A model generated the notes under the pieces. The model did not search any database. It had not been told where the DNA came from and saw only the letters and a list, made by a program, of their open reading frames with translations. From Perkinsela sp. CCAP 1560/9 (lineage: Eukaryota; Protista; Euglenozoa: Kinetoplastea): a DNA stretch of 64,000 nt. Location: NCBI GenBank assembly GCA_965644495.1, contig CBFFSA010000007.1, positions 620,001 to 684,000 on the forward strand, written 5' to 3'. A program made the translations under genes and the position numbers. Positions 16,865 to 63,222 of this stretch are shown in pieces. The stretch's first letter is position 1. Each line of letters opens with the position of its first letter.

Positions 16865-18426
16865 ATGGCGCGCGACAACCCCAATCGAATTGAGGACGCG
16901 GAAGATTTGGTTCGCCGTTTTCGTTCTTATATTGATCGTCAGAATCGCAACAGTGAGCGCTTGAGTGGCAACAGTGAGCGCTTTAATCAGGGCGATGGTG
17001 ATGTGCCTTGGGAAGATCAACGAGTTGAAATTCCATCTACGCAAGTTGCTCGTCGCACTTGTAGTGGATGTGTTCCAAATCCAAAAAAAAATCCAAATCA
17101 TTCCGGATCGCTCCGGATGGTCACTGGCAAGCCAGACCCTTCACAGACAGATTTGGAAGTTCCGAGGCCGACGTCCTCTACCAGTTTCCGCTTGTCCAAG
17201 GCGGCACCAACGTGCTGTTGCCAACATGCTGCGTCGACGAACTGTACGTCAACACGGCTTACCCAAGAGGTGTAAGCCGGGTAAGGGAGCTTGTTCCCTG
17301 AGGGGAGGGTCCGGGACGGTCCTCCGAGTACTGGGCCTAGTCGGTTATCAGCCCAGCCTCTTAGAGTGAGGCCGCCGGGAATATTGCGATGAGCGGGTTT
17401 GAACTCGCCGTCTGAGCACCATGTGCTTCAAACTTTGAATTCTTGCCACCCCGCCACCCCCACCATGGATGTGTTGGGTTTGCGTGCGTTCGTTCGTGGA
17501 AAAACTTGCGCCACATTCCTCAAGGCGAGTCCGCCATCGAATGGATGTTAAACAATCATTTGCTTCGACACCCTCGTTGCGAAAAACATGGCCCTGACTA
17601 CATGAGGGAAGTACGCGGAAGACCGCACATAGAAATATGTACGTATCGTGCTGACGATGATCGCAACCCATGTCGTGCGCGAGCGTTTAGATTCTCCCCT
17701 TTTTTGAACAGTCGCCCTGCGGTGGATGTAGACACTCTTCTTCTAATGTGGGGGGAAATCGCGAACAACCTCACGACAGGGCTAATCAGTCGTAACCGTG
17801 GAGTGCGGCAAGGCACCTTTACAAAGTTCCTTCACATGGTAGGTAACGCAGCGTTCCACCAACAGGAAAACACGGATTTTAACTTTTCCAAACTGCAAGT
17901 GGATGAAACATTCATAGGAAAGCGGAAATATAACCGTGGGAAAAGGGTCCGAAAAATAGGATGGTGGTTCGTCACGGTGACAGAAATCGATGATCGGAAA
18001 ATGGGCCGAACACACTGGAAACTGGTAAAGCGCCGTGATCAAGAAACCCTTCTGAACTTTATAACCCCACATCTAACAAGAGCTCGGTCCGTCGTGGTTA
18101 CGGATGAATGGCGAGGGTACTGGAACCTTGGTGATTATTGCCGGCACTTCACTGTAAACCACAGCAAGGAGTTTTTCACTTTGAGGGGCCACCATGCCAA
18201 TCACGCGGAAGCTGCGCATCGAACCATTCAACAATGGACGAAACAGCAACACTACAACTATGGGGCGACATCGATGGACCTTCGGCGAAACGTGGCTCTC
18301 CAATGCGTCAAATATGGCTACGGCAAAACAGAGCGACGAAAATCGTGGCAGACTCGGTTCATTAACATTCTCGAATGCATCTGCACTCATTACGGGTACG
18401 AGGAAATGACGAGCAGTTGGATGTAA
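16865..18426 (+). pseudogene. Merlin DDE transposase interrupted by a SINE
   Basis: QVDETFIGKRKYNRG, VTDEWRGY and TVNHSKEF motifs; 16865-17074 joins 17476-18426 in frame (RTCSGCV|GFACVR) once the SINE and one TSD copy are removed. Confidence 0.9.
17075..17465 (-). mobile_element. SINE family 1, full-length copy with 10-bp TSD
   Basis: TGGATGTGTT at 17065-17074 and 17466-17475; tRNA-like head near 17385-17465; tail at 17075-17100. Confidence 0.9.
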
Positions 18427-36114: not shown

Positions 36115-39027
36115 CTACAAATAGTACGGCATTTGTCGCAGTTCCATTCCCACGTTTGGCTTGGCAGCGGAGGAGGTTCCGTGGAAGAATGCCAACTTGC
36201 TTGCGCATTGCAGGACGAAGGGTGCCTTGATGGATCCGGGCCAGTTCGTGTACATCCAGCACAGGTGGTAGGACATGTTCTCTATAGCTTGCAAGGGCAA
36301 ACCGCCATCACGGAGCACAAAGTACTTGACCGGTTTCGAGGTAGCCAGGGTGCAGTCGACAGCGATTTGGGAAAAGGAGTGGGAGCTGTGCTCGACAACA
36401 TGTCCACGAGGAATGTTGTGCCACTCCACCCGTCCGCCCTTTGATACTGGCGCTGCGTAGCGATCATGAATACGTTTCTGGACTACCATGAAGGTAAGTT
36501 CAACGTTTTTGCTTCCGAGTAATTTTTCACAGTCCGCCATCTCTTCAACGCGCACACGGTCCATCATGCTGTCTCCCACACCGTCGCGGTACACTACAAC
36601 GCGTCCGACATTGGAACCTTTCACGAGCACCTCGAACACTTCTTCGAGAAATTCCTTCAATGTAGTCATGCTCATGCGATCCATCACTGGGCTACGTCCG
36701 TCAGTCTGCTCACTCGCGGCTCCAGCATTGCGGCGGCTTTCAGTCGATGATCCTCCCATCATCTTCTGTCGGGACACCTGCATGTCTGTGTTGCACAAAT
36801 GGCTCCACTTTCGAGTCTCCGCATTGTAGTACCAGGCTACAAAACCAGCGAGGTTGCGACGTTGATTTTCGAAGGATCCGGATTCACTTGCTTCGCTTTT
36901 GCGATCGCTATAGATATCGTAGCCCACGTAGATGGTGCCATTTGCTCCAAGCTCCGGAACGTTGCTCGGAATGTCAACCAGCCACAATGGCGTACCCATC
37001 TTAGCAGTCACATTCTTCGCAATGTTGTGAACATAGGGTCCTGCCGTTTTTGCCTTGCTCATCTTGTCAAAGTCTACGAATTGGGAGACGATGCCCATAG
37101 ACCCCAGTTCGCTCTTCAACGTGCCGTAGGCATCCTGACCACGTGTGCTGTGGCCGTTGCTGAGGACGCATAGCACAAGGGCGGGTGTACCTTCCGCCAT
37201 GGCCTGGCGTACGGCATCGGTTCGCACGGAGTCCAAGCATTTGTCGATAAAGTCGCGGTCGTCTTCACCACTATCGACGAAGGTGACAGGTCCTTTCGCC
37301 TTCCATACGCCACGAATGCGTTCGTTGACATCCATAATTTGACGCACTAAGTCACGAGCCTTAGCACCCCAACCAAAGACTTGGTATTCTTTGCGTTCCT
37401 CGTTGAACTGAATCCGCATGGTCTGGGGAGCGAAATCTTGATTCGGGCGGAGAGTCTCTGGAGAGCCAACGATCTGGACTTTGACGGTCTTCATTTCTTT
37501 CGGTTGTATGGTTTCCAATGCCGCATTCTTGATCTGAAGGCCGTATCCGCTCAGGAGCTCTTTCGGTTCCTGTTCATCGAATCTCTTCACCAACTTGATA
37601 CACTGATCTTGCATTTCCTCGGGCATCTTGGAGCATCGCGTCGGAAGGAAGCGTCGTGCTTCAGTGCTTAATTGGTCCACAAGGACGAATTCAGGAATGA
37701 GGCGGACGCGGCCGGAGCGCTCACCCCAGATAAGAGGCTGATCCGTCTTTGTAACCTCCAACCCATACGTCTCCTTGTAGTAATCCGCATAAGAGATCGT
37801 TCGTCCGCTCTTAAGCTCGAAGACGGACTCCACCGTCGTCCCCTTATCCACTTTGTAGACCATGTAGTTGCGCTTCCTCGTTCCGTAAGACGTCATCACC
37901 TTGAGACCCAGCAGACTGCGCGGCCCGTTCTTGTTGAGGTAGTCCAGCGCAGTTACACGTGCTTCCACATGACTTCGAGGATGAACAATGAGAACAACAC
38001 CGTTGTCTGTCAACTGGAATGTTGCAAAGTAACCAGGTACCACAATCATATCGCGATACACACGTTGCCGAGTGAAATCGCAGTATATTTTTCCTGTTCG
38101 GCGAAGATCTAATGATTCCAGAATTCGGCATAACACATGATTGTACACTTGCATCGTTTGTTCCTCATTAGAGCGGGGGTTGAGTTGCACCTTAGTGATG
38201 TCTTCTTTGCGTAGTTCCATTGTGGTCTTGAAAGATCCAAGGGAGACTTCACGTGAAAGCGGTTCTTGCAAATGTTCGGAGATATCCTCAAGGCAATAAA
38301 AGTTAGTTCCAGAGATGATCAAATCGAGCTTCTTGAGGTATTCCTTTTCTAAGACTTGGCGAAGATATCCGAATAGAAGCTTCTTACGTTGAATTTCGCT
38401 GATGTTTTCATTTTTCTCGATGCTGAGGGGATACATGTAGACCTCCGCCTTACTGATGGAGACACTGACAGCATTCCACATTACGTCGCGGCATGGTGCA
38501 CGCTGACGGAGGGCGTCACGTTCGGATGCCATCAAACGACCACGTTCCGTCCTGTCTTTATCAGCCCAGAAACGATCCCAACAGCCACTGCAACAGCGTT
38601 TATTGGGGACGTCCGCATGCTTTCCTACTCGGCATAACTTACCACAGCTGTCGCATTTGGCGTACTCGCTCCCAATGAAGGGCATCATGCTTCCGGTGCC
38701 CGGACCACCTCCCATGGGACCGCCCATCGGACGGGGACCACCGGGTGCACCACCCGGAGGGCCACCTGGTCGTCCTCCAGGAGCTGGGCCACGATCGTCT
38801 CTTCGGTAGTTGTCGTTTCGGCGATCATCGCGGCGGTTGTCATCCCGGCGATAGTCTTGGCGGTGGTCACGCGAGCGATCGTCCCTGCGATAGTCGTCGC
38901 GACGGTCATCGCGTCGATAATCATCACGACGGTCATCGCGCCGATAATCATCACGACGATCATCGCGCCGATAATCATCGCGCCGGTAGTCGTCACGTCG
39001 GTAGTCGTCGCGTCGATTGTAACTCAT
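36115..39027 (-). CDS. AGO1: Argonaute/PIWI protein, copy 1
   Basis: PAZ (ISYADYYKETYGLEVTKTDQPLI..LIPE), MID (YGTLK...IVSQ..N..AKMG), PIWI (VGYD, YRDGVG, VVQKR, NWPG..KLA). Confidence 0.92.
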   Translation of the reverse strand: MSYNRRDDYRRDDYRRDDYRRDDRRDDYRRDDRRDDYRRDDRRDDYRRDDRSRDHRQDYRRDDNRRDDRRNDNYRRDDRGPAPGGRPGGPPGGAPGGPRPMGGPMGGGPGTGSMMPFIGSEYAKCDSCGKLCRVGKHADVPNKRCCSGCWDRFWADKDRTERGRLMASERDALRQRAPCRDVMWNAVSVSISKAEVYMYPLSIEKNENISEIQRKKLLFGYLRQVLEKEYLKKLDLIISGTNFYCLEDISEHLQEPLSREVSLGSFKTTMELRKEDITKVQLNPRSNEEQTMQVYNHVLCRILESLDLRRTGKIYCDFTRQRVYRDMIVVPGYFATFQLTDNGVVLIVHPRSHVEARVTALDYLNKNGPRSLLGLKVMTSYGTRKRNYMVYKVDKGTTVESVFELKSGRTISYADYYKETYGLEVTKTDQPLIWGERSGRVRLIPEFVLVDQLSTEARRFLPTRCSKMPEEMQDQCIKLVKRFDEQEPKELLSGYGLQIKNAALETIQPKEMKTVKVQIVGSPETLRPNQDFAPQTMRIQFNEERKEYQVFGWGAKARDLVRQIMDVNERIRGVWKAKGPVTFVDSGEDDRDFIDKCLDSVRTDAVRQAMAEGTPALVLCVLSNGHSTRGQDAYGTLKSELGSMGIVSQFVDFDKMSKAKTAGPYVHNIAKNVTAKMGTPLWLVDIPSNVPELGANGTIYVGYDIYSDRKSEASESGSFENQRRNLAGFVAWYYNAETRKWSHLCNTDMQVSRQKMMGGSSTESRRNAGAASEQTDGRSPVMDRMSMTTLKEFLEEVFEVLVKGSNVGRVVVYRDGVGDSMMDRVRVEEMADCEKLLGSKNVELTFMVVQKRIHDRYAAPVSKGGRVEWHNIPRGHVVEHSSHSFSQIAVDCTLATSKPVKYFVLRDGGLPLQAIENMSYHLCWMYTNWPGSIKAPFVLQCASKLAFFHGTSSAAKPNVGMELRQMPYYL

Positions 39028-42853: not shown

Positions 42854-43840
42854 ATGAATTCTAGCGATAGCGAAGAGCTGTCGAGCGGGGTCACTCTTTC
42901 GGATGAAAATGATTCTGATTGGAATCCATCAGATGAAATGGAATCAGATTTCTCTGAATCACAAGAATCGTCTTCTTTTTCGTCGAATGGTTCGTGTGCT
43001 TCTCTAGGATATGATTCGCCGCACGACGTACGTGTATTGTCTAGTTCATCCAGCTACTCAACTTCCAGTGGCTCGGAATCTTCGTATTCTTCTTCTTCGG
43101 AATCTTCGTATTCTTCTTCGGAATCTTCGTATTCTTCTGCTAGCGAAAGTAACGTTTCCTCCCCTCTCCCACTTTCCCCTCTCTTACTTTCTCCTGCACG
43201 CCGTGTTTGCTCTTCGACCCGCTCTCGCATTCCATCTTTTTCACCAGACTGTTTTCAAAGAAGTGGATCGTTGTCTCCAGGATTTGATGCCGAGCTATTG
43301 GAAGCGATACGTGATATTAAGGACGTTCACTCCGATATATCCCACCCAGCTGTTGACAACACCTTCTCTGATAGTTTACCCCCTGAAATGGAAGAACCAG
43401 ATTCCAAACAACCAACCAATCAGTTAATTACAGATCCAAGAGATGATCAATTAAAATCTTTGGAGAAAAAAATCAGTGCCAAAGATGCAGTTATCAAGAG
43501 GCTGCGCAACAAACTTTGCAAGACTAAACGCAAAGTGAAGACTCTTGAAAAGCGTGGAAGTAAGCAGAAGGAAGACTTTTTGGAGACCGAAAAGCGGAAA
43601 ACAGAAATGGAGATCAAAGTGGAAATATTAAAAAGGGACAACGCAAGCGCTCGCACAGAGTGTCAGGACCTGAAAAAACGTTTCAATCACTTAATGTGCG
43701 AGCGGCAGAAAACACTTAAAATAGTAAGCGAGTTCCGTCGCGCATCTCTGCTTGAAAAAAAAGAGCGAAGCGTTGGAAAGAAAAGAGGTCGTCCGATGAA
43801 AAAGAAAAATGAAAGAAAACGCTATCTAACTGCAGTTTAA
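42854..43840 (+). CDS. Ser-rich/coiled-coil ORF inside the Tc1-like element, probably the N-terminal part of a broken transposase
   Basis: 328 aa: acidic Ser-rich region, coiled coil, KKRGRP AT-hook/NLS-like motif; ends 44 bp before the DDE ORF. Confidence 0.6.
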   Translation: MNSSDSEELSSGVTLSDENDSDWNPSDEMESDFSESQESSSFSSNGSCASLGYDSPHDVRVLSSSSSYSTSSGSESSYSSSSESSYSSSESSYSSASESNVSSPLPLSPLLLSPARRVCSSTRSRIPSFSPDCFQRSGSLSPGFDAELLEAIRDIKDVHSDISHPAVDNTFSDSLPPEMEEPDSKQPTNQLITDPRDDQLKSLEKKISAKDAVIKRLRNKLCKTKRKVKTLEKRGSKQKEDFLETEKRKTEMEIKVEILKRDNASARTECQDLKKRFNHLMCERQKTLKIVSEFRRASLLEKKERSVGKKRGRPMKKKNERKRYLTAV

Positions 43841-43884: not shown

Positions 43885-44943
43885 TTGTTCTGTCAAGCGG
43901 ATCTTTGCTATATGTTTATCTTGCCGAAGCAAACGTGCAGTCGCTTGATTAGAAAAATTGACGGTCAATCTATAAATGTCACGCTGCGCCTCCAAAAAAT
44001 TGAGACAGTGCGTCGAACTATATCAGAGTGGGGCAGCGCCGACGAGGCAAAGAAACTTTTTGCCCGCGTTATGGCCGAGAATCCAGTACATCGTTCCCTC
44101 AATTATCTACGCAGGGCTATGGAAAAACAAAGCGAGGGGTCTATCCAGGTTTCGCGCCACAGAATGCGTGCGTTACTTTACTATTATGACTATTCTTATG
44201 GATCAAAAAAACGAACTTTGCATCTCACTGCTCGCAAGCGGGAGGCCCGCGTTAATTTTTGTAAGGCGATGCTACAAGAAAATGAACGAACTGAAGGCCA
44301 GTTCTTTGAGAAACTCGTCTTTACTGATGAGACATTCGTCTGTGAAGGGGATTCTTCCACGTCTACCTGGCAAAGTCGATATGATCGAGTTGCGCGTAAC
44401 AGAGACTTTCACCCCATTAAGGTCATGATATGGGGAGGTATCGACAATCAAGGCAATTTTATATTTCACTGGTGTGACAATTTCGCGTCCTTTTATGCGA
44501 ACGAGATAAGCCGCCCTGTGCAGCCTGGGGAAAAGCGTGAAACGCTTCCTGATCAACTAAAACTCGGGAGCCTATATTATCGTCGCGAAATTCTTGATGC
44601 AGAGTGGGTTCGATACTGTGAGGTAAACCCCACCGCGGTTTACATGGATGATGGAGCCTCGCCGCATACGAGTAAGAAGACACAGCTGTGGTGGAAAAGG
44701 CATGTTGCTTCCGGACATTACGCACAATGTTTGCGGTACATGTCTGGCGTAGAGGACGTAAATCCTTTCCGGTGGCCCGCAGACTCCCCGGATCTAAATC
44801 CCATTGAAAACTTTTGGGCAAGAATTCGGCATGCAAAGAACCAGACGTTTCCTCGCACGTCTGAGGAGATAAAAAGAGTGTCTCAAAGTTATTTTCTCTC
44901 TCTTGAGGGTAGAAGTTGCATAACACATTTAAAAAACGTTTAG
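43885..44943 (+). pseudogene. Tc1/IS630-like transposase DDE domain (DD51E spacing)
   Basis: VFTDET, VMIWGGI, MDDGASPH, WPADSPDLNPIENFW; apparent frameshifts at both ends. Confidence 0.85.
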
Positions 44944-47224: not shown

Positions 47225-50137
47225 TTACAAATAGTACGGCATTTGTCGCAGTTCCATTCCCACGTTTGGCTTGGCAGCGGAGGAGGTTCCGTGGAAGAAT
47301 GCCAACTTGCTTGCGCATTGCAGGACGAAGGGTGCCTTGATGGATCCGGGCCAGTTCGTGTACATCCAGCACAGGTGGTAGGACATGTTCTCTATAGCTT
47401 GCAAGGGCAAACCACCATCACGGAGCACAAAGTACTTGACCGGTTTCGAGGTAGCCAGGGTGCAGTCGACAGCGATTTGGGAAAAGGAGTGGGAGCTGTG
47501 CTCGACAACATGTCCACGAGGAATGTTGTGCCACTCCACCCGTCCGCCCTTTGATACTGGCGCTGCGTAGCGATCATGAATACGTTTCTGGACTACCATG
47601 AAGGTAAGTTCAACGTTTTTGCTTCCGAGTAATTTTTCACAGTCCGCCATCTCTTCAACGCGCACACGGTCCATCATGCTGTCTCCCACACCGTCGCGGT
47701 ACACTACAACGCGTCCGACATTGGAACCTTTCACGAGCACCTCGAACACTTCTTCGAGAAATTCCTTCAATGTGGTCATGCTCATGCGATCCATCACTGG
47801 GTTACGTCCGTCAGTCTGCTCACTCGCGGCTCCAGCATTGCGGCGGCTTTCAGTCGATGATCCTCCCATCATCTTCTGTCGGGACACCTGCATGTCTGTG
47901 TTGCACAAATGGCTCCACTTTCGAGTCTCCGCATTGTAGTACCAGGCTACAAAACCAGCGAGGTTGCGACGTTGATTTTCGAAGGATCCGGATTCACTTG
48001 CTTCGCTTTTGCGATCGCTATAGATATCGTAGCCCACGTAGATGGTGCCATTTGCTCCAAGCTCCGGAACGTTGCTCGGAATGTCAACCAGCCACAATGG
48101 CGTACCCATCTTAGCAGTCACATTCTTCGCAATGTTGTGAACATAGGGTCCTGCCGTTTTTGCCTTGCTCATCTTGTCAAAGTCTACGAATTGGGAGACG
48201 ATGCCCATAGACCCCAGTTCGCTCTTCAACGTGCCGTAGGCATCCTGACCACGTGTGCTGTGGCCGTTGCTGAGGACGCATAGCACAAGGGCGGGTGTAC
48301 CTTCCGCCATGGCCTGGCGTACGGTATCGGTTCGCACGGAGTCCAAGCATTTGTCGATAAAGTCGCGGTCGTCTTCACCACTATCGACGAAGGTGACAGG
48401 TCCTTTCGCCTTCCATACGCCACGAATGCGTTCGTTGACATCCATAATTTGACGCACTAAGTCACGAGCCTTAGCACCCCAACCAAAGACTTGGTATTCT
48501 TTGCGTTCCTCGTTGAACTGAATCCGCATGGTCTGGGGAGCGAAATCTTGATTCGGGCGGAGAGTCTCTGGAGAGCCAACGATCTGGACTTTGACGGTCT
48601 TCATTTCTTTCGGTTGTATGGTTTCCAATGCCGCATTCTTGATCTGAAGGCCGTATCCGCTCAGGAGCTCTTTCGGTTCCTGTTCATCGAATCTCTTCAC
48701 CAACTTGATACACTGATCTTGCATTTCCTCGGGCATCTTGGAGCATCGCGTCGGAAGGAAGCGTCGTGCTTCAGTGCTTAATTGGTCCACAAGGACGAAT
48801 TCAGGAATGAGGCGGACGCGGCCGGAGCGCTCACCCCAGATAAGAGGCTGATCCGTCTTTGTAACCTCCAACACATACGTCTCCTTGTAGTAATCCGCAT
48901 AAGAGATCGTTCGTCCGCTCTTAAGCTCGAAGACGGACTCCACCGTCGTCCCCTTATCCACTTTGTAGACCATGTAGTTGCGCTTCCTCGTTCCGTAAGA
49001 CGTCATCACCTTGAGACCCAGCAGACTGCGCGGCCCGTTCTTGTTGAGGTAGTCCAGCGCAGTTACACGTGCTTCCACATGACTTCGAGGATGAACAATG
49101 AGAACAACACCGTTGTCTGTCAACTGGAATGTTGCAAAGTAACCAGGTACCACAATCATATCGCGATACACACGTTGCCGAGTGAAATCGCAGTATATTT
49201 TTCCTGTTCGGCGAAGATCTAATGATTCCAGAATTCGGCATAACACATGATTGTACACTTGCATCGTTTGTTCCTCATTAGAGCGGGGGTTGAGTTGCAC
49301 CTTAGTGATGTCTTCTTTGCGTAGTTCCATTGTGGTCTTGAAAGATCCAAGGGAGACTTCACGTGAAAGCGGTTCTTGCAAATGTTCGGAGATATCCTCA
49401 AGGCAATAAAAGTTAGTTCCAGAGATGATCAAATCGAGCTTCTTGAGGTATTCCTTTTCTAAGACTTGGCGAAGATATCCGAATAGAAGCTTCTTACGTT
49501 GAATTTCGCTGATGTTTTCATTTTTCTCGATGCTGAGGGGATACATGTAGACCTCCGCCTTACTGATGGAGACATTGACAGCATTCCACATTACGTCGCG
49601 GCATGGTGCACGCTGACGGAGGGCGTCACGTTCGGATGCCATCAAACGACCACGTTCCGTCCTGTCTTTATCAGCCCAGAAACGATCCCAACAGCCACTG
49701 CAACAGCGTTTATTGGGGACGTCCGCATGCTTTCCTACTCGGCATAACTTACCACAGCTGTCGCATTTGGCGTACTCGCTCCCAATGAAGGGCATCATGC
49801 TTCCGGTGCCCGGACCACCTCCCATGGGACCGCCCATCGGACGGGGACCACCGGGTGCACCACCCGGAGGGCCACCTGGTCGTCCTCCAGGAGCTGGGCC
49901 ACAATCGTCTCTTCGGTAGTTGTCGTTTCGGCGATCATCGCGGCGGTTGTCATCCCGGCGATAGTCTTGGCGGTGGTCACGCGAGCGATCGTCCCTGCGA
50001 TAGTCGTCGCGACGGTCATCGCGTCGATAATCATCACGACGGTCATCGCGCCGATAATCATCACGACGATCATCGCGCCGATAATCATCGCGCCGGTAGT
50101 CGTCACGTCGGTAGTCGTCGCGTCGATTGTAACTCAT
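47225..50137 (-). CDS. AGO1: Argonaute/PIWI protein, copy 2
   Basis: 970 aa, five residues different from copy 1. Confidence 0.92.
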   Translation of the reverse strand: MSYNRRDDYRRDDYRRDDYRRDDRRDDYRRDDRRDDYRRDDRRDDYRRDDRSRDHRQDYRRDDNRRDDRRNDNYRRDDCGPAPGGRPGGPPGGAPGGPRPMGGPMGGGPGTGSMMPFIGSEYAKCDSCGKLCRVGKHADVPNKRCCSGCWDRFWADKDRTERGRLMASERDALRQRAPCRDVMWNAVNVSISKAEVYMYPLSIEKNENISEIQRKKLLFGYLRQVLEKEYLKKLDLIISGTNFYCLEDISEHLQEPLSREVSLGSFKTTMELRKEDITKVQLNPRSNEEQTMQVYNHVLCRILESLDLRRTGKIYCDFTRQRVYRDMIVVPGYFATFQLTDNGVVLIVHPRSHVEARVTALDYLNKNGPRSLLGLKVMTSYGTRKRNYMVYKVDKGTTVESVFELKSGRTISYADYYKETYVLEVTKTDQPLIWGERSGRVRLIPEFVLVDQLSTEARRFLPTRCSKMPEEMQDQCIKLVKRFDEQEPKELLSGYGLQIKNAALETIQPKEMKTVKVQIVGSPETLRPNQDFAPQTMRIQFNEERKEYQVFGWGAKARDLVRQIMDVNERIRGVWKAKGPVTFVDSGEDDRDFIDKCLDSVRTDTVRQAMAEGTPALVLCVLSNGHSTRGQDAYGTLKSELGSMGIVSQFVDFDKMSKAKTAGPYVHNIAKNVTAKMGTPLWLVDIPSNVPELGANGTIYVGYDIYSDRKSEASESGSFENQRRNLAGFVAWYYNAETRKWSHLCNTDMQVSRQKMMGGSSTESRRNAGAASEQTDGRNPVMDRMSMTTLKEFLEEVFEVLVKGSNVGRVVVYRDGVGDSMMDRVRVEEMADCEKLLGSKNVELTFMVVQKRIHDRYAAPVSKGGRVEWHNIPRGHVVEHSSHSFSQIAVDCTLATSKPVKYFVLRDGGLPLQAIENMSYHLCWMYTNWPGSIKAPFVLQCASKLAFFHGTSSAAKPNVGMELRQMPYYL

Positions 50138-51544
50138 AGAATTTGGTTAAAAGTAGTTAAATTTTCAGGTTCCGTTGTATGTCCTTGTTGTATCTGACAT
50201 ACAACAATTAGGACATAATGTCCGAGAAACGACTTATTGATGTTGCATGTGATTAAACAGAGAAACTATGGGAGACTTTTATACATTCAGCGAATTGTGG
50301 GTTAAGTTGTTTCATATCAGCGAATCACTACAAGAGTAATCATCATGGAATTTTCTGGAGATACGTGGAAACAGTGTTTCATTGTGACAACCGGTCATCT
50401 ACAGACTCTCCATTGCATTTTTATCCCCCCAGACCCTTTTTTCATTCATTCTCGAGCCAGCAATCCTTCGGAGGTTTCACCTGCTTCGGATTCCGCTCCT
50501 TCGATTTCAAGTCCTTCAATCGAGACTTCCCCAAGTCAACGAGCTTTTCACGACTTGCGCGAACAGTGTCAATGTTGGCATTTCATGCTACTACTATCCT
50601 AAGTTCTTAATAAAATATGCCCATGCCCACTTAGTATGCCTAGTTGGTATACTAAGTGGCCTTGGGAAAGGCTACTAGGTATACTAAGGCATGGGTATAC
50701 TAACATGGTTTAGTAAAACTTTTCAGTAAAATTCTACTAAAATACATATTTTCTTTCCTGTATCCGAAAAAAAAACAAAAAAACACTTTGAAATTTCATC
50801 CAAAAATATATGTTCAAAAAACATCGGTTTACAGTATTTTTCCGTGGTTACGCAGAGAGGTTCCCCTTTTATGCAAAAGATATTAGTAGAAAAGCTTGCC
50901 TGTAGCTTTCACAATGTTTGTTCCATTTTTCGATCATAGGGACAACACGCAAACGGAGGAAGAGCTCGCTGTAGACTACGCCAAAGTACTACATAACCTC
51001 CACGGGGAGGAGATCTCACGGTTCGCTTCAATGATCATGGTTGGATACTCACCTCCGAGCCTCATTAACACCCGCTCCTGGGGAAAGTCCGATGGACACG
51101 AGACGTGCTGCATATGTCGGGAAAGAAAACAAACACTCAGACACATCTTAACATTTTGTTATTCGTGCAGTAAACTGCAGAGATTAATAACGAGAAAGAT
51201 AGGGAGTTTCCCTGTCATTGCGCCCAAAACGCACTTCTTTCTCTCAGTTTATCACCTCACTGGAAGCTTGGCATCAACCAGTTGGGGTATTCCCGTTGCT
51301 GGTAAATGCAGAAACTCCCGCATAGTGCTCGCTGCACGAACTTCTCCCTACACTGCGAGGCCATTGTCTTGCCTCCAAATAGAGAGTTTAGGGCGCGCGC
51401 GGAAGTATTGAGCTTCTCTCGCGCCTACCTCGAACACCAGGAGAAAAATAGACGGATTTTCCATTTTCCGTTGCTTGTATAGGTGATTATACTTATAGGT
51501 GATTATACTTTCTAACTTTCCGTTCTTGCGCCGTTTCAAAGTTT

Positions 51545-52968
51545 GGCGGATTGTCAACACCCACGCACCATTTTTATTCCCAGAAAATAATTTTCTTGTC
51601 ATTTCCAGTGCACCACTTTTTCTTGAGAACTGTATTCTCATTTCCAATGCACCATCAATTATTTAAAGAAGTATTATTTTATAATATCCTTCGGATCTAC
51701 ACTACAAATGCGCCATTATTCAAGACTCAGTCATTACGATTGTAATCGTATTCAATCAATCTTTACATCTGGCGAGAGTCGGCGAAGCATAGCTCGAATA
51801 ATTGGCAAAAGTCACAGCACTGTTTGTCGCGAGTTGGCGAGTAATGCAAGAAGGGGTCAGCGCTATGAGGGGACGAGGGCACAGTACATTTCGAAAAGAC
51901 GCCTCTCGTGTAAAAAGGTCAAGCCTCACAAGATACAAGGCCTTTTGGAAGAGGAAGTCAGCTCTCGACTTCAAAAGAAGCACAGCCCGGAACAGATTGC
52001 AAATACGATCCGTAGCTGTCGTACCGTCTCGACTTCTACCATATATCGCCATATTCGTCGCAACGCGTCCTTAGGCGGCAAGTTGTACACCCATTTGCGG
52101 ATCCGGCGAAAGAGGCCATACCGTCGTCGCACCAGACCTGATCGCAGCGCGATTCCCAACCGAACACCACTTGAAAATCGACCAGAAATTGTTAATAAGC
52201 GTCGGCGCTACGGCGATTGGGAAGCAGACTTGGTCGAGGGTCGAGGACATGGCGGATATATTCTTACCCTGTGCGAGCGTAAGAGTCGCTTCCTTGTTCT
52301 TCGCAAGTTGGAAGCTAAGCACGCGAAGGGGGTAAGCAAACAAATTGTAGACGGGTTAAAAAATTACAAGGTTCAAACAATCACATACGACAACGGAACA
52401 GAATTCTGGCACCATGAAGAAGTAGACAAAGAATTAAAATGCAAGTCTTTCTTTTGCGCTCCGTATCATTCGTGGGAGAAAGGGTCTGTGGAACATGCAA
52501 ACGGTTTGATCCGACAATTCCATCAGAAAACCGAATCTTTTGAGAATTTAAACCAAAGTGAATTAAACAAAACAGCATTGGAATTGAACACTCGTCCCCG
52601 GAAATTATTAAATTATCGTTCTCCAATGGATTTTGTGAATGAACTGCGTAAGTAAAAGAAGCTAAGTAAGCAAAGGTACGTGAGAAAGCTTGTAAAGTTA
52701 GTCTGTTAGTGTTGGAAATTTAATGACAATAAATTTAAGCATTTTGTAAAGGTGAAGAAATTCTTGTCTAATAAAGTTTCTTACTCAAACCTTACACTTG
52801 TACTACGCTTTCTTAAAATACTCTGGATAAGTTTTTATGTTGAAAGGAAAAAGGAACGATGTTCAACTATGGTGAGGCGCAGAAAAAAGGAATGACGGTC
52901 GACTATGGTGAAAAAAGTGGTGCGCTGGAGTTGACAATGGGGTGATGCACTGGAGTCGAACATCCGGG
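51545..52968 (+). mobile_element. IS30-family insertion sequence, 1424 bp
   Basis: 26-bp imperfect IRs GGCGGATTGTCAACACCCACGCACCA / CCCGGATGTTCGACTCCAGTGCATCA (reverse complement; 16/26 match); TTT duplicated at 51542-51544 and 52969-52971. Confidence 0.88.
51708..52655 (+). CDS. IS30-family transposase, intact
   Basis: HTH (SIARIIGKSHSTVCREL), SPEQIA, STSTIYR, GDWEADLV, TITYDNGTEF, PYHSWEKGSVEHANGLIRQF, LNTRPRKLL.Y.SP; D-D-33-E. Confidence 0.95.
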   Translation: MRHYSRLSHYDCNRIQSIFTSGESRRSIARIIGKSHSTVCRELASNARRGQRYEGTRAQYISKRRLSCKKVKPHKIQGLLEEEVSSRLQKKHSPEQIANTIRSCRTVSTSTIYRHIRRNASLGGKLYTHLRIRRKRPYRRRTRPDRSAIPNRTPLENRPEIVNKRRRYGDWEADLVEGRGHGGYILTLCERKSRFLVLRKLEAKHAKGVSKQIVDGLKNYKVQTITYDNGTEFWHHEEVDKELKCKSFFCAPYHSWEKGSVEHANGLIRQFHQKTESFENLNQSELNKTALELNTRPRKLLNYRSPMDFVNELRK

Positions 52969-55301
52969 TTTTCTTCCCAAGGGGACGTAAGCTCAATAAT
53001 ATATTCCGACCCGTTGTGCAACCTCACCCACCCGTCTGGTCTCAGTTCAGTTCCATGCGAGAGCCAGGCGGGTGCGTTGCGGTACAGTGATACGTCGAAG
53101 TGGGAGGAGGCTGTCATAGGGGAGTCGGAAACGGCGTCCGCTAAAGCCATTAAGATGAGATCATGCCGGTAAGTGTACCGACCTTGCTCCAGAGACACCT
53201 TGCTACCCGTGAGGATGTGCCGCGGGGTGCACTGCATCACTCCTTCAGGAAAGATACACATATAGACCCAACGCAGTCCTGAAAGTATTGCGTGACCACA
53301 TAAACGAATGTGGTCACGTGCTGTAAATTATCCTGTACTGTAAATTACAGTATTTTTCCACGGTTACGCAGAGAGGATCTCCTTTGATGCAAAAGAAATT
53401 ACTAAGTAGTAGAAAAGCATGCCTGTAGCTTTCACAATGTTTGTCCCATTTTTCGATCATGGGTCTGTATCGCACTTCAGGTGCAAGCGTGGAGGCCCTC
53501 CACTGGAGGGTGTGGATGGGAATCTCACTGTAAGGCAAAAAATCACTATTTTAAACACAGGCGGGAATGTCGGGAGAAACAGGAGACGCTTGCACTTGAG
53601 ACCTCGGAACTAGCCAAAAATGAAGCGATGGGATTAGAGTGTTACTATTAAAAGGTCCTTCCGTGCGTTCAAGCGTCTGCGATTTTATCCACTTCGCGAT
53701 TCTTATGGCTGGTGACGGCGTTAGAGAAGCTAAGACCGACGGTACCGTCCGACACGATCATGAAATCCCTTCCGAAAGCAAGCGCCATATTTCATAAGTG
53801 TGGTGCCACGCTTGCAGAAGAATTATTGGATATGTTGTGTCATGACATAGACACACATGTGTACTATGGTTTAGCGGTAGACGCCGGTATTGATCGCGTC
53901 AAGTCGGAGCACGTTCTTATCAGCGTGCTATACATGTATGTTGAAAAAAAGGAGTATGTCTTCCCAGCGTTATACACGTCGAAGTATAAAGCTTTCGATG
54001 GCAAACTAATGGCGAATGATCTCAACACGCTTGTGGGTAACATAAGCCAGGAGCGATTGTTAAAATTAAAGTTCATGATGGTAGACGGAAGCACTGTCAA
54101 TTATGTTGCCCGAGAAGCATGTGAAGGTCATCTTCGAGCTATATACGAGCGAATTCACCCTGTTGGGGCTTCTGATGTGGAAGCATTTGAAAGAGATTCT
54201 GCAGCGATCCGAAAATAACTTTGCTGTCCTGCATTGGACATACTGAATAACGTATGCTGAATAACGTCTGCAAGACATCGCTACAGATTTATGAGTCACA
54301 ACCGTCGCTGAAGCTGAAGCATGAGTTCTGCAAAGCCTTCTATTCGGGTGGTCGAGCGTGTGCATCGAAGGGAAAGTACAAGGCGTTGCTCTCGATCAGG
54401 CTCTCATTCGTTTTGACCCCGAATTTATAAGGATGAAATTTCTTTCCGCCAATATCTTCTCGGACATACAGAAGAAACCCCTTCTCAGTGGAAATTGGTT
54501 CTTGAGTCAAAGCTGAATGATTGTTCAACGAAATTGAAGGTAATTATTCCACCTGAAACAAGCATTCTACAAGCCAAGCTTGCTGATACTGGAATTGACT
54601 GGGCTACCAAATATGCAATATTAAAGGAGCGTGACCCGGTGATTATTAGTGCCATGAAGAATGCTAGAGACACTCGTATCGTTGCAACTCCCAAACTCGG
54701 CGGGGTTATAAGATGGTGCACAAACAAATCTACTTGCATGAAATTTCTCTCAGAAGAAATCAGGCTGCTTATGTTGCTCATGAGGCCGGAAGACCGAAGC
54801 CGTCTAAATCCATATTGAGATGCAATGAAACTATCAACAACGTTGGGTGCGATGCGATCGAGTCGGAATGTCGAAATTTTCTTACGGAATGCAAGCCTCT
54901 GCATGTCGCCCTAAAAGCGTTTTCTGATATGATGGGGCAGCCTATGGCAGCGCACGTTGCTCAGACATTAGAGCTACTCTTCGAGCACGCTTCACCTCGG
55001 GATGCGCCTCCGGGTTTCCTAGAAGCATTAAAACATCACAAGCGTCAACTGGAAAAGAACCATAATATGAAGTTTTGGAAGGAGGTTATGTGGTTCAGAC
55101 CAAGTTGGATAGTGCAATGCGCTCGACCATCAAACACTCCCTCAATTTCTTGGAAACGCGCCAAAAATTTCTTTCCCGGATCCCTTTACTGTCCAGAAAA
55201 TGGTAACGAGCCTCCAATTTTTTGCATTACAGAGGAGTGGAAGGAATGTGTAGCACACGAGGACTACAGATGGAATCCGCCCGCACACGCCAACGAATAT
55301 A

Positions 55302-60309: not shown

Positions 60310-63222
60310 TTACAAATAGTACGGCATTTGTCGCAGTTCCATTCCCACGTTTGGCTTGGCAGCGGAGGAGGTTCCGTGGAAGAATGCCAACTTGCTTGCG
60401 CATTGCAGGACGAAGGGTGCCTTGATGGATCCGGGCCAGTTCGTGTACATCCAGCACAGGTGGTAGGACATGTTCTCTATAGCTTGCAAGGGCAAACCGC
60501 CATCACGGAGCACAAAGTACTTGACCGGTTTCGAGGTAGCCAGGGTGCAGTCGACAGCGATTTGGGAAAAGGAGTGGGAGCTGTGCTCGACAACATGTCC
60601 ACGAGGAATGTTGTGCCACTCCACCCGTCCGCCCTTTGATACTGGCGCTGCGTAGCGATCATGAATACGTTTCTGGACTACCATGAAGGTAAGTTCAACG
60701 TTTTTGCTTCCGAGTAATTTTTCACAGTCCGCCATCTCTTCAACGCGCACACGGTCCATCATGCTGTCTCCCACACCGTCGCGGTACACTACAACGCGTC
60801 CGACATTGGAACCTTTCACGAGCACCTCGAACACTTCTTCGAGAAATTCCTTCAATGTAGTCATGCTCATGCGATCCATCACTGGGCTACGTCCGTCAGT
60901 CTGCTCACTCGCGGCTCCAGCATTGCGGCGGCTTTCAGTCGATGATCCTCCCATCATCTTCTGTCGGGACACCTGCATGTCTGTGTTGCACAAATGGCTC
61001 CACTTTCGAGTCTCCGCATTGTAGTACCAGGCTACAAAACCAGCGAGGTTGCGACGTTGATTTTCGAAGGATCCGGATTCACTTGCTTCGCTTTTGCGAT
61101 CGCTATAGATATCGTAGCCCACGTAGATGGTGCCATTTGCTCCAAGCTCCGGAACGTTGCTCGGAATGTCAACCAGCCACAATGGCGTACCCATCTTAGC
61201 AGTCACATTCTTCGCAATGTTGTGAACATAGGGTCCTGCCGTTTTTGCCTTGCTCATCTTGTCAAAGTCTACGAATTGGGAGACGATGCCCATAGACCCC
61301 AGTTCGCTCTTCAACGTGCCGTAGGCATCCTGACCACGTGTGCTGTGGCCGTTGCTGAGGACGCATAGCACAAGGGCGGGTGTACCTTCCGCAATGGCCT
61401 GGCGTACGGCATCGGTTCGCACGGAGTCCAAGCATTTGTCGATAAAGTCGCGGTCGTCTTCACCACTATCGACGAAGGTGACAGGTCCTTTCGCCTTCCA
61501 TACGCCACGAATGCGTTCGTTGACATCCATAATTTGACGCACTAAGTCACGAGCCTTAGCACCCCAACCAAAGACTTGGTATTCTTTGCGTTCCTCGTTG
61601 AACTGAATCCGCATGGTCTGGGGAGCGAAATCTTGATTCGGGCGGAGAGTCTCTGGAGAGCCAACGATCTGGACTTTGACGGTCTTCATTTCTTTCGGTT
61701 GTATGGTTTCCAATGCCGCATTCTTGATCTGAAGGCAGTATCCGCTCAGGAGCTCTTTCGGTTCCTGTTCATCGAATCTCTTCACCAACTTGATACACTG
61801 ATCTTGCATTTCCTCGGGCATCTTGGAGCATCGCGTCGGAAGGAAGCGTCGTGCTTCAGTGCTTAATTGGTCCACAAGGACGAATTCAGGAATGAGGCGG
61901 ACGCGGCCGGAGCGCTCACCCCAGATAAGAGGCTGATCCGTCTTTGTAACCTCCAACCCATACGTCTCCTTGTAGTAATCCGCATAAGAGATCGTTCGTC
62001 CGCTCTTAAGCTCGAAGACGGACTCCACCGTCGTCCCCTTATCCACTTTGTAGACCATGTAGTTGCGCTTCCTCGTTCCGTAAGACGTCATCACCTTGAG
62101 ACCCAGCAGACTGCGCGGCCCGTTCTTGTTGAGGTAGTCCAGCGCAGTTACACGTGCTTCCACATGACTTCGAGGATGAACAATGAGAACAACACCGTTG
62201 TCTGTCAACTGGAATGTTGCAAAGTAACCAGGTACCACAATCATATCGCGATACACACGTTGCCGAGTGAAATCGCAGTATATTTTTCCTGTTCGGCGAA
62301 GATCTAATGATTCCAGAATTCGGCATAACACATGATTGTACACTTGCATCGTTTGTTCCTCATTAGAGCGGGGGTTGAGTTGCACCTTAGTGATGTCTTC
62401 TTTGCGTAGTTCCATTGTGGTCTTGAAAGATCCAAGGGAGACTTCACGTGAAAGCGGTTCTTGCAAATGTTCGGAGATATCCTCAAGGCAATAAAAGTTA
62501 GTTCCAGAGATGATCAAATCGAGCTTCTTGAGGTATTCCTTTTCTAAGACTTGGCGAAGATATCCGAATAGAAGCTTCTTACGTTGAATTTCGCTGATGT
62601 TTTCATTTTTCTCGATGCTGAGGGGATACATGTAGACCTCCGCCTTACTGATGGAGACATTGACAGCATTCCACATTACGTCGCGGCATGGTGCACGCTG
62701 ACGGAGGGCGTCACGTTCGGATGCCATCAAACGACCACGTTCCGTCCTGTCTTTATCAGCCCAGAAACGATCCCAACAGCCACTGCAACAGCGTTTATTG
62801 GGGACGTCCGCATGCTTTCCTACTCGGCATAACTTACCACAGCTGTCGCATTTGGCGTACTCGCTCCCAATGAAGGGCATCATGCTTCCGGTGCCCGGAC
62901 CACCTCCCATGGGACCGCCCATCGGACGGGGACCACCGGGTGCACCACCCGGAGGGCCACCTGGTCGTCCTCCAGGAGCTGGGCCACGATCGTCTCTTCG
63001 GTAGTTGTCGTTTCGGCGATCATCGCGGCGGTTGTCATCCCGGCGATAGTCTTGGCGCTGGTCACGCGAGCGATCGTCCCTGCGATAGTCGTCGCGACGG
63101 TCATCGCGTCGATAATCATCACGACGGTCATCGCGCCGATAATCATCACGACGATCATCGCGCCGATAATCATCGCGCCGGTAGTCGTCACGTCGGTAGT
63201 CGTCGCGTCGATTGTAACTCAT
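60310..63222 (-). CDS. AGO1: Argonaute/PIWI protein, copy 3
   Basis: 970 aa, four residues different from copy 1. Confidence 0.92.
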   Translation of the reverse strand: MSYNRRDDYRRDDYRRDDYRRDDRRDDYRRDDRRDDYRRDDRRDDYRRDDRSRDQRQDYRRDDNRRDDRRNDNYRRDDRGPAPGGRPGGPPGGAPGGPRPMGGPMGGGPGTGSMMPFIGSEYAKCDSCGKLCRVGKHADVPNKRCCSGCWDRFWADKDRTERGRLMASERDALRQRAPCRDVMWNAVNVSISKAEVYMYPLSIEKNENISEIQRKKLLFGYLRQVLEKEYLKKLDLIISGTNFYCLEDISEHLQEPLSREVSLGSFKTTMELRKEDITKVQLNPRSNEEQTMQVYNHVLCRILESLDLRRTGKIYCDFTRQRVYRDMIVVPGYFATFQLTDNGVVLIVHPRSHVEARVTALDYLNKNGPRSLLGLKVMTSYGTRKRNYMVYKVDKGTTVESVFELKSGRTISYADYYKETYGLEVTKTDQPLIWGERSGRVRLIPEFVLVDQLSTEARRFLPTRCSKMPEEMQDQCIKLVKRFDEQEPKELLSGYCLQIKNAALETIQPKEMKTVKVQIVGSPETLRPNQDFAPQTMRIQFNEERKEYQVFGWGAKARDLVRQIMDVNERIRGVWKAKGPVTFVDSGEDDRDFIDKCLDSVRTDAVRQAIAEGTPALVLCVLSNGHSTRGQDAYGTLKSELGSMGIVSQFVDFDKMSKAKTAGPYVHNIAKNVTAKMGTPLWLVDIPSNVPELGANGTIYVGYDIYSDRKSEASESGSFENQRRNLAGFVAWYYNAETRKWSHLCNTDMQVSRQKMMGGSSTESRRNAGAASEQTDGRSPVMDRMSMTTLKEFLEEVFEVLVKGSNVGRVVVYRDGVGDSMMDRVRVEEMADCEKLLGSKNVELTFMVVQKRIHDRYAAPVSKGGRVEWHNIPRGHVVEHSSHSFSQIAVDCTLATSKPVKYFVLRDGGLPLQAIENMSYHLCWMYTNWPGSIKAPFVLQCASKLAFFHGTSSAAKPNVGMELRQMPYYL

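Follow-up and report, generated by a model that had tools for sequence, protein, structure and literature searches.

The eukaryotic DNA transposon groups IS481EU (from parabasalids) and IS3EU/GingerRoot are each named after a similar prokaryotic insertion sequence (IS) family (PMC10045372), and are cut-and-paste-type DDE groups that correspond to one prokaryotic IS family; their distribution is limited to a few lineages, and their origin is ascribed to prokaryote-derived transfer (PMC10045372). IS607-like sequences, as well as IS5 in bdelloid rotifers, similarly represent prokaryotic IS families integrated in eukaryotic genomes by horizontal transfer; a systematic screen of 430 eukaryote genomes recovered IS607 only, and inverted repeats, duplications, and transposition could not be shown for it (Gilbert and Cordaux 2013, PMC3673617). 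In kinetoplastids, the first DNA transposons to be reported belong to Merlin, which is related to IS1595/IS1016 (PMC8101967). This superfamily is old and widespread among eukaryotes, and its duplications are 8 bp long. Transposons go unmentioned in a 2026 preprint that deals with the genomes of free-living kinetoplastids. Zebrafish embryos support the function of the E. coli IS30 transposase (Szabo et al. 2003, cited in PMC3413126). Within the literature on IS30 in eukaryotes, protists, and kinetoplastids, a comparison that lies outside Repbase and Dfam, we found neither a eukaryotic IS30 lineage nor the name “IS30EU”, such that IS30 stands as a large IS family, known from bacteria and archaea, with no eukaryotic branch found in that literature.

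We analyzed a 64,000-nucleotide stretch of DNA (hereafter, the window) that carries, at positions 51545–52968 on the plus strand, a 1424-bp element (family A of this genome) which is very probably a full-length IS30-family DNA transposon that resides and transposes in the nuclear DNA of a kinetoplastid-type protist. The bacterial IS30 elements with which it compares most closely (ISfinder; Verrucomicrobiota-rich subclade L095–L098, P0002, and P0223) likewise encode a single DDE transposase with an HTH_38 domain and a DD(33)E triad, are 40–47% identical to it at the protein level (the nearest proteins coming mostly from Verrucomicrobiota MAGs), and have ~25-bp inverted repeats starting with GGYGGATT and 3-bp duplications, as does the element. 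In contrast to these relatives, the element resides in a eukaryotic nuclear host, is longer (1424 vs 1082–1214 bp), has wider untranslated margins (163 and 313 bp vs ~82 and 40–175 bp), reiterates its end motif (three left-end and two right-end copies), has a GC content of 43% and a GC3 of 46% (vs 57% and 70%, respectively, in a Verrucomicrobiae relative), has given rise to non-autonomous derivatives, and belongs to a clade of its own made up of the eukaryotic copies. It thus falls outside the compactness that characterizes the IS30 family (~1.0–1.25 kb, nearly all ORF), with the ORF accounting for 67% of its length.

When compared to the eukaryotic groups introduced above, the duplication is fixed at 3 bp, as opposed to 4/15/25 bp or 6 bp in IS481EU and IS3EU/GingerRoot, and the host is a kinetoplastid-type protist. 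Two properties of such groups in the sense of PMC10045372, namely multicopy presence in the nucleus with recognizable ends and duplications, and a separate clade, are found here. In contrast to the IS607-like sequences, the present lineage is a diversified one, and its many duplications document that it has transposed. Like Merlin, the element is an IS-related DDE transposon in kinetoplastid-type genomes, but it is IS30 proper. We note that the window also holds a Merlin-like ORF, at 17443–18426.

The transposase gene (51708–52655, plus strand) encodes 315 amino acids with no interruption, as had been read from the sequence beforehand, and scores 242.4 bits against the NCBIfam model transpos_IS30 (NF033563; cut-off 80, E = 7e-72, profile positions 1–267), compared to 57 bits against the IS481 model (NF033577), which is below the cut-off of 224. 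Pfam recognizes HTH_38 (residues 3–44, E = 3e-10) and rve, and the protein is organized as an N-terminal HTH_38 domain, a basic patch spanning R131–R146, and an RNase-H-like core. Our alignment places the catalytic triad at D174, D228, and E262 (codons 52227–52229, 52389–52391, and 52491–52493, plus strand), with 33 residues between the second aspartate and the glutamate. Both aspartates are invariant and the glutamate nearly so across 20 eukaryotic and bacterial sequences, with one eukaryotic transposase (L067) having a lysine in place of the catalytic glutamate. The transposase would bind the repeats and join the ends, and the conserved basic patch, RIRRKRPYRRRTRPDR, may serve nuclear entry.

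The ends of the element are set at 51545 and 52968 by seven full copies in the genome, all of which start with GGCGGATTGTCAAC (GGTGG in one copy), end with CATCCGGG, and are 1424 bp in length. The left terminal inverted repeat (51545–51571, plus strand) begins GGCGGATT, and the right one (52942–52968, minus strand) ends ...CATCCGGG. These repeats, which had been put at 26 bp and imperfect, measure 27 bp, with 20 of 27 positions matching in the majority copy and fewer in the window copy. They contain a 21-bp motif (majority left-end copy, TTGTCAACACCAACGCACCAC) that recurs beneath both ends: the first left copy lies at 51551–51571, a second direct copy at 51596–51616 (plus strand) includes the polypyrimidine-AG TTTTCTTGTCATTTCCAG, a third, weaker direct copy lies at 51635–51655 (plus strand), and a subterminal inverted copy lies at 52917–52937 (minus strand), where comparison with its left terminal counterpart in the majority copy gives 2 mismatches. 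Six of the seven full copies have the polypyrimidine-AG; in the remaining one, the AG is kept and the tract carries a single substitution. An inner motif pair (51550–51582 with 52906–52938) was considered as the true ends, and is ruled out by the seven copies. An Rfam search of the window gave no match.

The element is flanked by the TTT duplication that the sequence-only reading had described, at 51542–51544 on the left and 52969–52971 on the right; only one TTT is present at the paralogous empty site. The window copy interrupts a minus-strand retrotransposon fragment within its endonuclease domain. The upstream part of this fragment (52969–53261) comprises a zinc-knuckle remnant and a restriction-like endonuclease motif, ...RPDGWVRLHNGSEYIIELTSPWEEN, and the downstream part (51163–51544) reads ...FETAQERKVRKY and then stops. 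When the element and one TTT are removed, the flanks align gap-free across the junction to paralogous copies of a reverse-transcriptase/restriction-like-endonuclease retroelement, one of which reads AAGTTTTCTTCCCAAGGGG and is identical at the joint, and the restored reading frame proposed earlier, PWEEN|FETAQERKVRKY, is reproduced. An intact paralog encodes a 1578-aa protein with RVT_1 and zf-RVT, the C-terminus of which reads ...IIELTSPWEENLEYAHERKVRKY. The retroelement hit by the window copy is itself a dead fragment, having become so either before the insertion or since, and a 16-bp tandem duplication lies within its downstream part, at 51478–51509.

Across the 21-Mb genome, the search for further copies with different flanks that the same reading had called for recovered seven full 1424-bp copies on six contigs with distinct flanks, each with a perfect 3-bp duplication (TTT for the window copy, and gga, gat, ctt, tac, gac, and cct for the other six), which cannot be chance in unrelated flanks. 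Three non-autonomous derivatives (731, 980, and 989 bp) carry the duplications cca, acc, and aac, and one derivative, on contig C19, has none. A perfect 3-bp duplication is present in 11 of the 12 insertions examined. The ends of the deletion derivatives are those of the young copies over the terminal 35–40 nt compared, other than two substitutions in one derivative. One copy is split by a TA-flanked element encoding a Tc1-like DDE protein (Tc1/mariner), with its outer duplication, gat, intact. In total, IS30 matches in the genome number 96 and fall into at least four families, with only 38–60% identity between families; many are decayed, with dozens of decayed fragments scattered over Mb-scale contigs. 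Over ten sites, we observed a weak tendency toward purine on the left and pyrimidine on the right that is not significant as a target-site preference. Insertion proceeds through a 3-bp staggered cut that yields the 3-bp duplication, and derivatives that lack the transposase gene were mobilized in trans. By analogy with what is known for IS30, the process may involve an IR-IR junction or circle intermediate, with the donor copy being kept.

These observations bear directly on whether an IS of a co-cultured bacterium could have been stitched into protist contigs by contamination or chimeric assembly. The transposase is clearly bacterial in character, both bacteria and prey are present in cultures of prokinetoplastids (PMC7859406), the assembly is not perfectly clean, as one small contig bears another, different 18S, and neither junction is bridged by the run contigs, which are short and broken at repeats. 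Such an origin is nevertheless extremely improbable, and we regard it as close to refuted, in line with the earlier argument from the precision of the insertion: it would have to account for eleven insertions into unrelated eukaryotic flanks, all with exact ends and a perfect 3-bp duplication, for the gap-free alignment of the empty-site paralogs, for the nested Tc1/mariner element, for the decayed fragments across Mb-scale contigs, and for a GC3 far below that of the bacterial relatives. A near-identical bacterium with discordant coverage had been named as a contrary outcome; instead, the closest bacterial protein among 5.8 billion is 47% identical, and the depth, taken from short Logan contigs of public runs that end at repeat borders, rises roughly 7-fold from ~54 in the nuclear flanks to ~393 at the center of the element, which matches the 7–8 assembled copies. 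The element occurs in only one further assembly, ERZ24900291, which derives from this same organism (L031 and L007 have 100% identical flanks). All junctions therefore rest on a single sequencing study (runs X1–X4) and on two assemblies from one organism.

E. coli IS elements, IS30 included, are known contaminants of cloned eukaryotic sequence, and one could therefore envision that such an element had hopped into cloned protist DNA. The likelihood of this is negligible: a search of 5,426 complete E. coli genomes found no match at the DNA level, even in distant mode, which refutes a cloning-host artifact, and the genome holds several diverged families together with decayed copies. The preferred reading remains that of a resident nuclear transposon.

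The host itself is a eukaryote, with an 18S-5.8S-28S unit on contig C11 and with MCM5, three PIWI/PAZ genes, and RT/RNase H among the genes in the window. Judging from protein identity, its MCM5 is closest to those of free-living Prokinetoplastina (63% to PhF-6 and 61% to PhM-4, compared to 58% to Perkinsela and 44% to trypanosomatids). The element therefore departs from the prokaryotic host range of the IS30 family, given the eukaryotic rDNA, MCM5, PIWI, kinesin, and PIG-P.

With regard to descent, all proteins more than 50% identical to the transposase come, among the matches listed, from this one organism's two assemblies; a relative's assembly that is in the database searched (ERZ25074155) has no match among those listed. 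A profile search of 1.84 billion representatives returned no intermediate, possibly eukaryotic, relatives, with ~1.2-kb marine metagenome IS contigs as the top non-self matches. In our maximum likelihood tree, 12 eukaryotic transposases, sampled from one host species, form one clade (UFBoot 95, SH-aLRT 94, 92% of bootstrap trees), which lies inside a clade with 100% support that takes in the Verrucomicrobiota-rich bacterial relatives, and thus the phylogeny against IS30 members that had been suggested places the element among bacterial IS30s. The terminal GGYGGATT is common to the element and two bacterial relatives, and a 1214-bp Verrucomicrobiae IS has the ends GGTGGATTCAGG and 3-bp duplications. 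This nesting, together with the shared end motif, argues on sequence grounds that the lineage is of bacterial IS30 descent, with nearest relatives that are rich in Verrucomicrobiota.

Whether this descent involved one acquisition or several hinges on the eukaryotic clade. Families A, B, and D are 38–45% identical to family C, yet each is ~46% identical to the same bacterial proteins, two changes are needed in 8% of bootstrap trees, and the stems are long (0.5–0.6), such that the monophyly of the two deep eukaryotic subclades could in part reflect long branches. Two or more separate transfers from related bacteria would explain these features, but we consider this quite unlikely, as the careful tree recovers one clade at 95/94, and the end core GGATTGTCA is common to families A and B and is absent from the bacterial relatives beyond GGATT. 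Thus, there was probably a single entry into the eukaryotic line, probably long ago, after which the lineage split into several families and drifted toward host base composition.

The sequence-only reading had taken the element to be horizontally acquired and recently active, and both the transfer and a recent burst of the family are borne out, with two corrections: the acquisition itself is not recent, and the window copy is one of the older ones. Five copies (L002–L006) differ by 3–8 nt in 1424 with no indels (99.4–99.8% identity), and the ORF is open in all seven full copies, from which it follows that the family has been recently active. Furthermore, L007 differs from the majority by 9 synonymous and 5 non-synonymous changes, which points to purifying selection on the transposase. 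In contrast, the window copy has 33 differences from the majority, 12 of them non-synonymous and 6 synonymous, and, on the basis of this ratio and its poorer inverted-repeat match, may itself be inactive. The acquisition is old and the lineage diversified, as seen from the number of matches, the divergence among the at least four families, the many decayed copies, and the host-ward composition; only the latest burst, that of family A, is recent.

One could extend the decay of the window copy to the entire family, in which case the copies would be genuine residents, now extinct and no longer moving. The near-neutral change in the window copy and the many decayed members, including L067 with its altered catalytic residue, are compatible with such a fossil family, as is the fact that neither polymorphism nor RNA lends support to present activity (X5, the one possible RNA run, has next to nothing at the locus). 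We consider it unlikely, however, in light of the five nearly identical copies with open ORFs, the synonymous excess in L007, and the duplication-flanked deletion derivatives that keep the ends of the young copies.

In terms of expression, the host would transcribe long same-strand gene arrays and cap its mRNAs by trans-splicing, and thus the element would need no promoter of its own; from its sequence, the polypyrimidine-AG in the 5′ margin is a candidate trans-splice acceptor, with the predicted AG at 51607–51608 (positions 63–64 of the element). More tentatively, it is possible, if less than probable, that the element represents the founding member of a eukaryotic IS30 superfamily (“IS30EU”), in which a Verrucomicrobiota-like IS became a self-sustaining, diversified nuclear transposon, with promoter-less polycistronic transcription and spliced-leader trans-splicing removing the barrier to expression, and with the acceptor placed within the repeated 5′-margin motif to which the transposase would bind. 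This provides a testable idea, namely that promoter-less bacterial genes may be tolerated unusually well by genomes that combine polycistronic transcription with trans-splicing. More broadly, a bacterial-type IS has moved many times in a eukaryotic nucleus, giving rise to non-autonomous derivatives and several families, which newly connects the DNA transposons of prokaryotes with those of eukaryotes, as IS481EU and IS3EU do, and provides a case of bacteria-to-eukaryote transposon transfer that is dated by divergence. From a practical perspective, the small 315-aa transposase with its 27-bp ends, being naturally functional in the nucleus of a kinetoplastid-type host, could be tried for ordinary insertional mutagenesis in laboratory kinetoplastids.

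Finally, the 1.5-kb flanks suggest, from small numbers, that same-strand open frames surround most of the young copies. In Pfam searches, the ORFs flanking the other copies mostly matched no family, with LRR found only near L007, and another IS30 ORF is flanked by the kinesin and PIG-P genes and by HSP90, all on the same strand.

The sole long open reading frame between 51545 and 52968 (51708–52655, + strand) encodes, without interruption, a 315-aa transposase that scores 242 bits (E = 7e-72) over the whole of NF033563, the NCBIfam IS30 transposase model (cut-off 80 bits), and falls far under the cut-offs of the IS481 and IS21 models. Pfam recognizes HTH_38 at the N-terminus together with an rve core, and aligning the protein to bacterial relatives shows no variation at D174 and D228 and almost none at E262, with 33 residues between the second aspartate and the glutamate. 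A D-to-E spacing of 33 residues is the IS30 signature, and the intact IS30 transposase with an HTH and a D-D-33-E triad proposed in the sequence-only reading is upheld.

A genome-wide search for further copies with different flanks and 2–3 bp target-site duplications, as that reading had suggested, recovered seven full-length copies (family A) in the assembly (21.0 Mb, 110 contigs), each of 1424 bp. All seven share the 5′ end GGCGGATTGTCAAC (one of them with GGTGG) and the 3′ end CATCCGGG, and all are flanked by perfect 3-bp direct repeats (ttt, gga, gat, ctt, tac, gac and cct), such that the ends placed at 51545 and 52968 prove exact. The terminal inverted repeats, correctly described as imperfect and bordered by a TTT duplication, match at 20 of 27 positions in the majority copy, and a 21-bp motif from within them is found three times on the left (element positions 7, 52 and 91) and twice, inverted, on the right (1373 and 1398).

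We rebuilt the empty site by fusing the 400 bp to the left of the element with the 400 bp to its right and deleting one TTT. The result aligns, with no gap where the flanks meet, to seven paralogs elsewhere in the genome, one of which is identical over the 19 bases straddling the joint, and the predicted reading frame, PWEEN|FETAQERKVRKY, is reproduced. In one paralog that is intact, the 1578-aa product combines RVT_1 and zf-RVT domains with the C-terminal motif ...RPDGWVRLHNGSEYIIELTSPWEENLEYAHERKVRKY, which is the PD-(D/E)xK restriction-like endonuclease characteristic of R2/CRE-type non-LTR retrotransposons, and these are eukaryotic elements. The interrupted retroelement consists of its last ~640 bp only, with stops downstream of the insertion, and at 51478–51509 it contains a perfect 16-bp tandem duplication (TATAGGTGATTATACT twice) that shifts the frame and that the paralogs lack; on these grounds the IS30 copy struck, or now sits in, a dead fragment, whether it was dead already at insertion or became so later.

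We also observed an 82% identical direct repeat of ~70–110 bp (50829–50895 and 53345–53418) bordering the retroelement/IS30 block on both sides, both copies of which begin an ORF reading MPVAFTMFVPFFDH. Separately, one contig from a public sequencing run of the organism, at a depth of 28 (about half that of the flanks), connects 51154 and 53227 through one intervening C, omitting exactly the retroelement fragment and the IS30 copy. A simple heterozygous empty allele is ruled out by the full depth of the filled junction, and this contig may represent a paralog or a second strain.

Several lines of evidence indicate that the element is a resident of this genome and not a contaminant. Besides several truncated family A copies, there are three derivatives (731, 980 and 989 bp; duplications cca, acc and aac) with internal deletions or replacements. 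In the terminal 35–40 nt shown, their ends are the same as in the young copies, except for two substitutions in one derivative. One IS30 copy, its outer gat duplication intact, is interrupted at position 498 by a Tc1/mariner-type element of 1556 bp (L010/L011, G000:C9:570524–572079), which has inverted ends CAGGGGTGCAAATCAGATGCTGGGGGG, is flanked by a TA duplication and contains a Tc1-like DDE ORF of 328 aa. Taken with the target-site duplications and the gap-free empty-site paralogs, this nested insertion and the trans-mobilized derivatives bear out the earlier claim of transposition inside a eukaryotic genome. The junction of the Tc1/mariner element with the IS30 copy is seen again at C2:1133059–1133557.

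The public runs yield short contigs that end at repeats, and element–flank junctions were taken from the assembly; in the best-covering run, depth rises from ~54 in the unique flanks to ~393 at the element centre, a roughly seven-fold increase that agrees with the assembled copy number. Near-identity to a bacterium was not found in the sets searched: the element DNA has no match among 5,426 complete E. coli genomes, and nothing more than 47% identical occurs among 5.8 billion clustered proteins, apart from proteins of a second assembly of the same organism. The base composition of the element (GC 43%, GC3 46%) fits that of the window (46%), unlike that of a verrucomicrobial relative (GC 57%, GC3 70%).

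The ORF is open in each of the seven family A copies, and five of them differ pairwise by only 3–8 nt in 1424 with no indels, which points to a very recent burst and supports the recent activity claimed for the family; judging from these sequences, family A is probably still active. Between L007, a more diverged copy, and the majority there are 26 differences, of which 9 in the ORF are synonymous and 5 non-synonymous; this ratio of roughly 0.2 is a sign of selection acting on the transposase. For the window copy the count is 33 differences (6 synonymous, 12 non-synonymous), a pattern closer to neutral decay after insertion; this insertion is an older one, whose enzyme may or may not still work.

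An IS30 profile search of the genome returned 96 matches, from intact ORFs to stop-riddled fragments, comprising at least four families with 38–60% protein identity between them: A, B (L054, L055), C (L051, L064, L067, L053) and D (L065, L075). Family B has the ends TGTGGATTGTCATACTCAG and a 3-bp duplication, and the core GGATTGTCA is common to the ends of families A and B. In the second assembly, a 275-aa family C-type ORF (L162, ERZ24900291 ctg3986l) lies in a same-strand gene array ordered DEAH helicase, S17, kinesin, PIG-P, IS30 and HSP90, the layout expected if it were expressed by read-through. We note that the otherwise intact 340-aa family C copy L067 (G000:C20:191627–192406) has its catalytic E replaced by K, and is either inactive or a protein that may have taken on a new role.

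Families A and C match the same bacterial proteins at 43–48% identity, mostly from Verrucomicrobiota (Verrucomicrobiales, Akkermansiaceae, Opitutales, Puniceicoccaceae; aquatic metagenomes) in a set with one genome per prokaryotic species. In a maximum-likelihood tree of 63 proteins (LG+C20+F+G4), the 12 eukaryotic sequences, all from this host, form one clade (ultrafast bootstrap 95, SH-aLRT 94, present in 92% of bootstrap trees), nested in a quick tree within a clade with those bacterial sequences (SH-aLRT 100%), as horizontal acquisition from prokaryotes had implied. A single transfer from Verrucomicrobiota-like bacteria followed by diversification in the protist is the most economical explanation, two transfers from related bacteria being a less likely alternative. 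One Verrucomicrobiae IS, present in four copies in one genome, measures 1214 bp, starts with GGTGGATTCAGG and makes 3-bp duplications, and another bacterial relative (1082 bp) starts with GGTGGATTCAA; it follows that both the GGCGGATT at the ends of the eukaryotic elements and their 3-bp stagger are inherited.

The element thus resembles bacterial IS30 in protein, ends and duplication, but differs in host, size, margins and its own clade, and is a eukaryotic offshoot of IS30 comparable in status to IS481EU or IS3EU. Named eukaryotic IS-like groups comprise ISL2EU, IS3EU and IS481EU, with more expected (PMC10045372), and when 430 eukaryote genomes were screened for every IS family, IS607 alone was recovered (PMC3673617). 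In agreement with the novelty claimed earlier, a search confined to the full-text literature yielded no published eukaryotic IS30. The original observation is confirmed and its interpretation supported with one correction: only the latest burst is recent, the lineage itself being old and diversified. This is of clear interest for transposon research and for the study of gene transfer into eukaryotes.

As to mechanism, the domain structure, ends, 3-bp stagger, mobilization of defective copies in trans and copy-number growth are demonstrated. By analogy with IS30, the transposase would bind the inverted repeats and join two ends into an IR–IR junction, which would then insert with the donor copy retained. 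The basic stretch R131–R146, also found in bacterial relatives, could serve as a nuclear localization signal, and the longer margins with their repeated predicted binding motifs may have been gained in the eukaryote. At 51591–51608 a polypyrimidine tract runs into an AG; six of the full-length copies have it, and in the seventh (L007) a single substitution alters the tract and leaves the AG in place. This site could accept a spliced leader, in which case read-through of a gene array would suffice for expression. According to Szabo et al. 2003, as cited in PMC3413126, the IS30 transposase of E. coli is active on plasmid targets in zebrafish embryos, so that a bacterial host factor does not seem indispensable.

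The IS30 copies sit on large contigs with MCM5/PIWI-type host genes, and contig C11 carries an 18S–5.8S–28S unit that scores as eukaryotic. A second, different 18S lies on the small contig C58 (G000:C58:32767–34872), 68–80% identical in alignable parts to that on C11 (G000:C11:510796–512820), with GC contents of 38% and 50%, respectively. The assembly thus includes rDNA of another eukaryote, and C58 probably derives from such an organism, e.g., prey, host or contaminant. The MCM5 gene of the window is intronless and only ~44% identical to trypanosomatid MCM5, and its comparison with trypanosomatids and with the free-living Prokinetoplastina PhF-6 and PhM-4 (Apiculatamorpha spiralis and Papus ankaliazontas, PMC7859406) identifies the host as a deep-branching kinetoplastid-type flagellate.

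The window further encodes an SRR1 protein and three PIWI/PAZ Argonaute genes (970 aa each) whose N-terminal region carries (Y)RRDD repeats (36115–39027, 47225–50137 and 60310–63222, all −), and the 99.5% identity of the 406 bp adjoining each indicates a recent segmental triplication. Its other mobile-element ORFs are a 327-aa Merlin-type transposase with an IS1595/ISXO2-like DDE domain (17443–18426, +), a Tc1-like DDE_3 transposase (43885–44943, +) preceded by a 328-aa ORF of no clear family (42854–43840, +), and an 879-aa ORF with RVT_1 and RNase H (13829–16468, −) from a retroelement other than the one struck by IS30.
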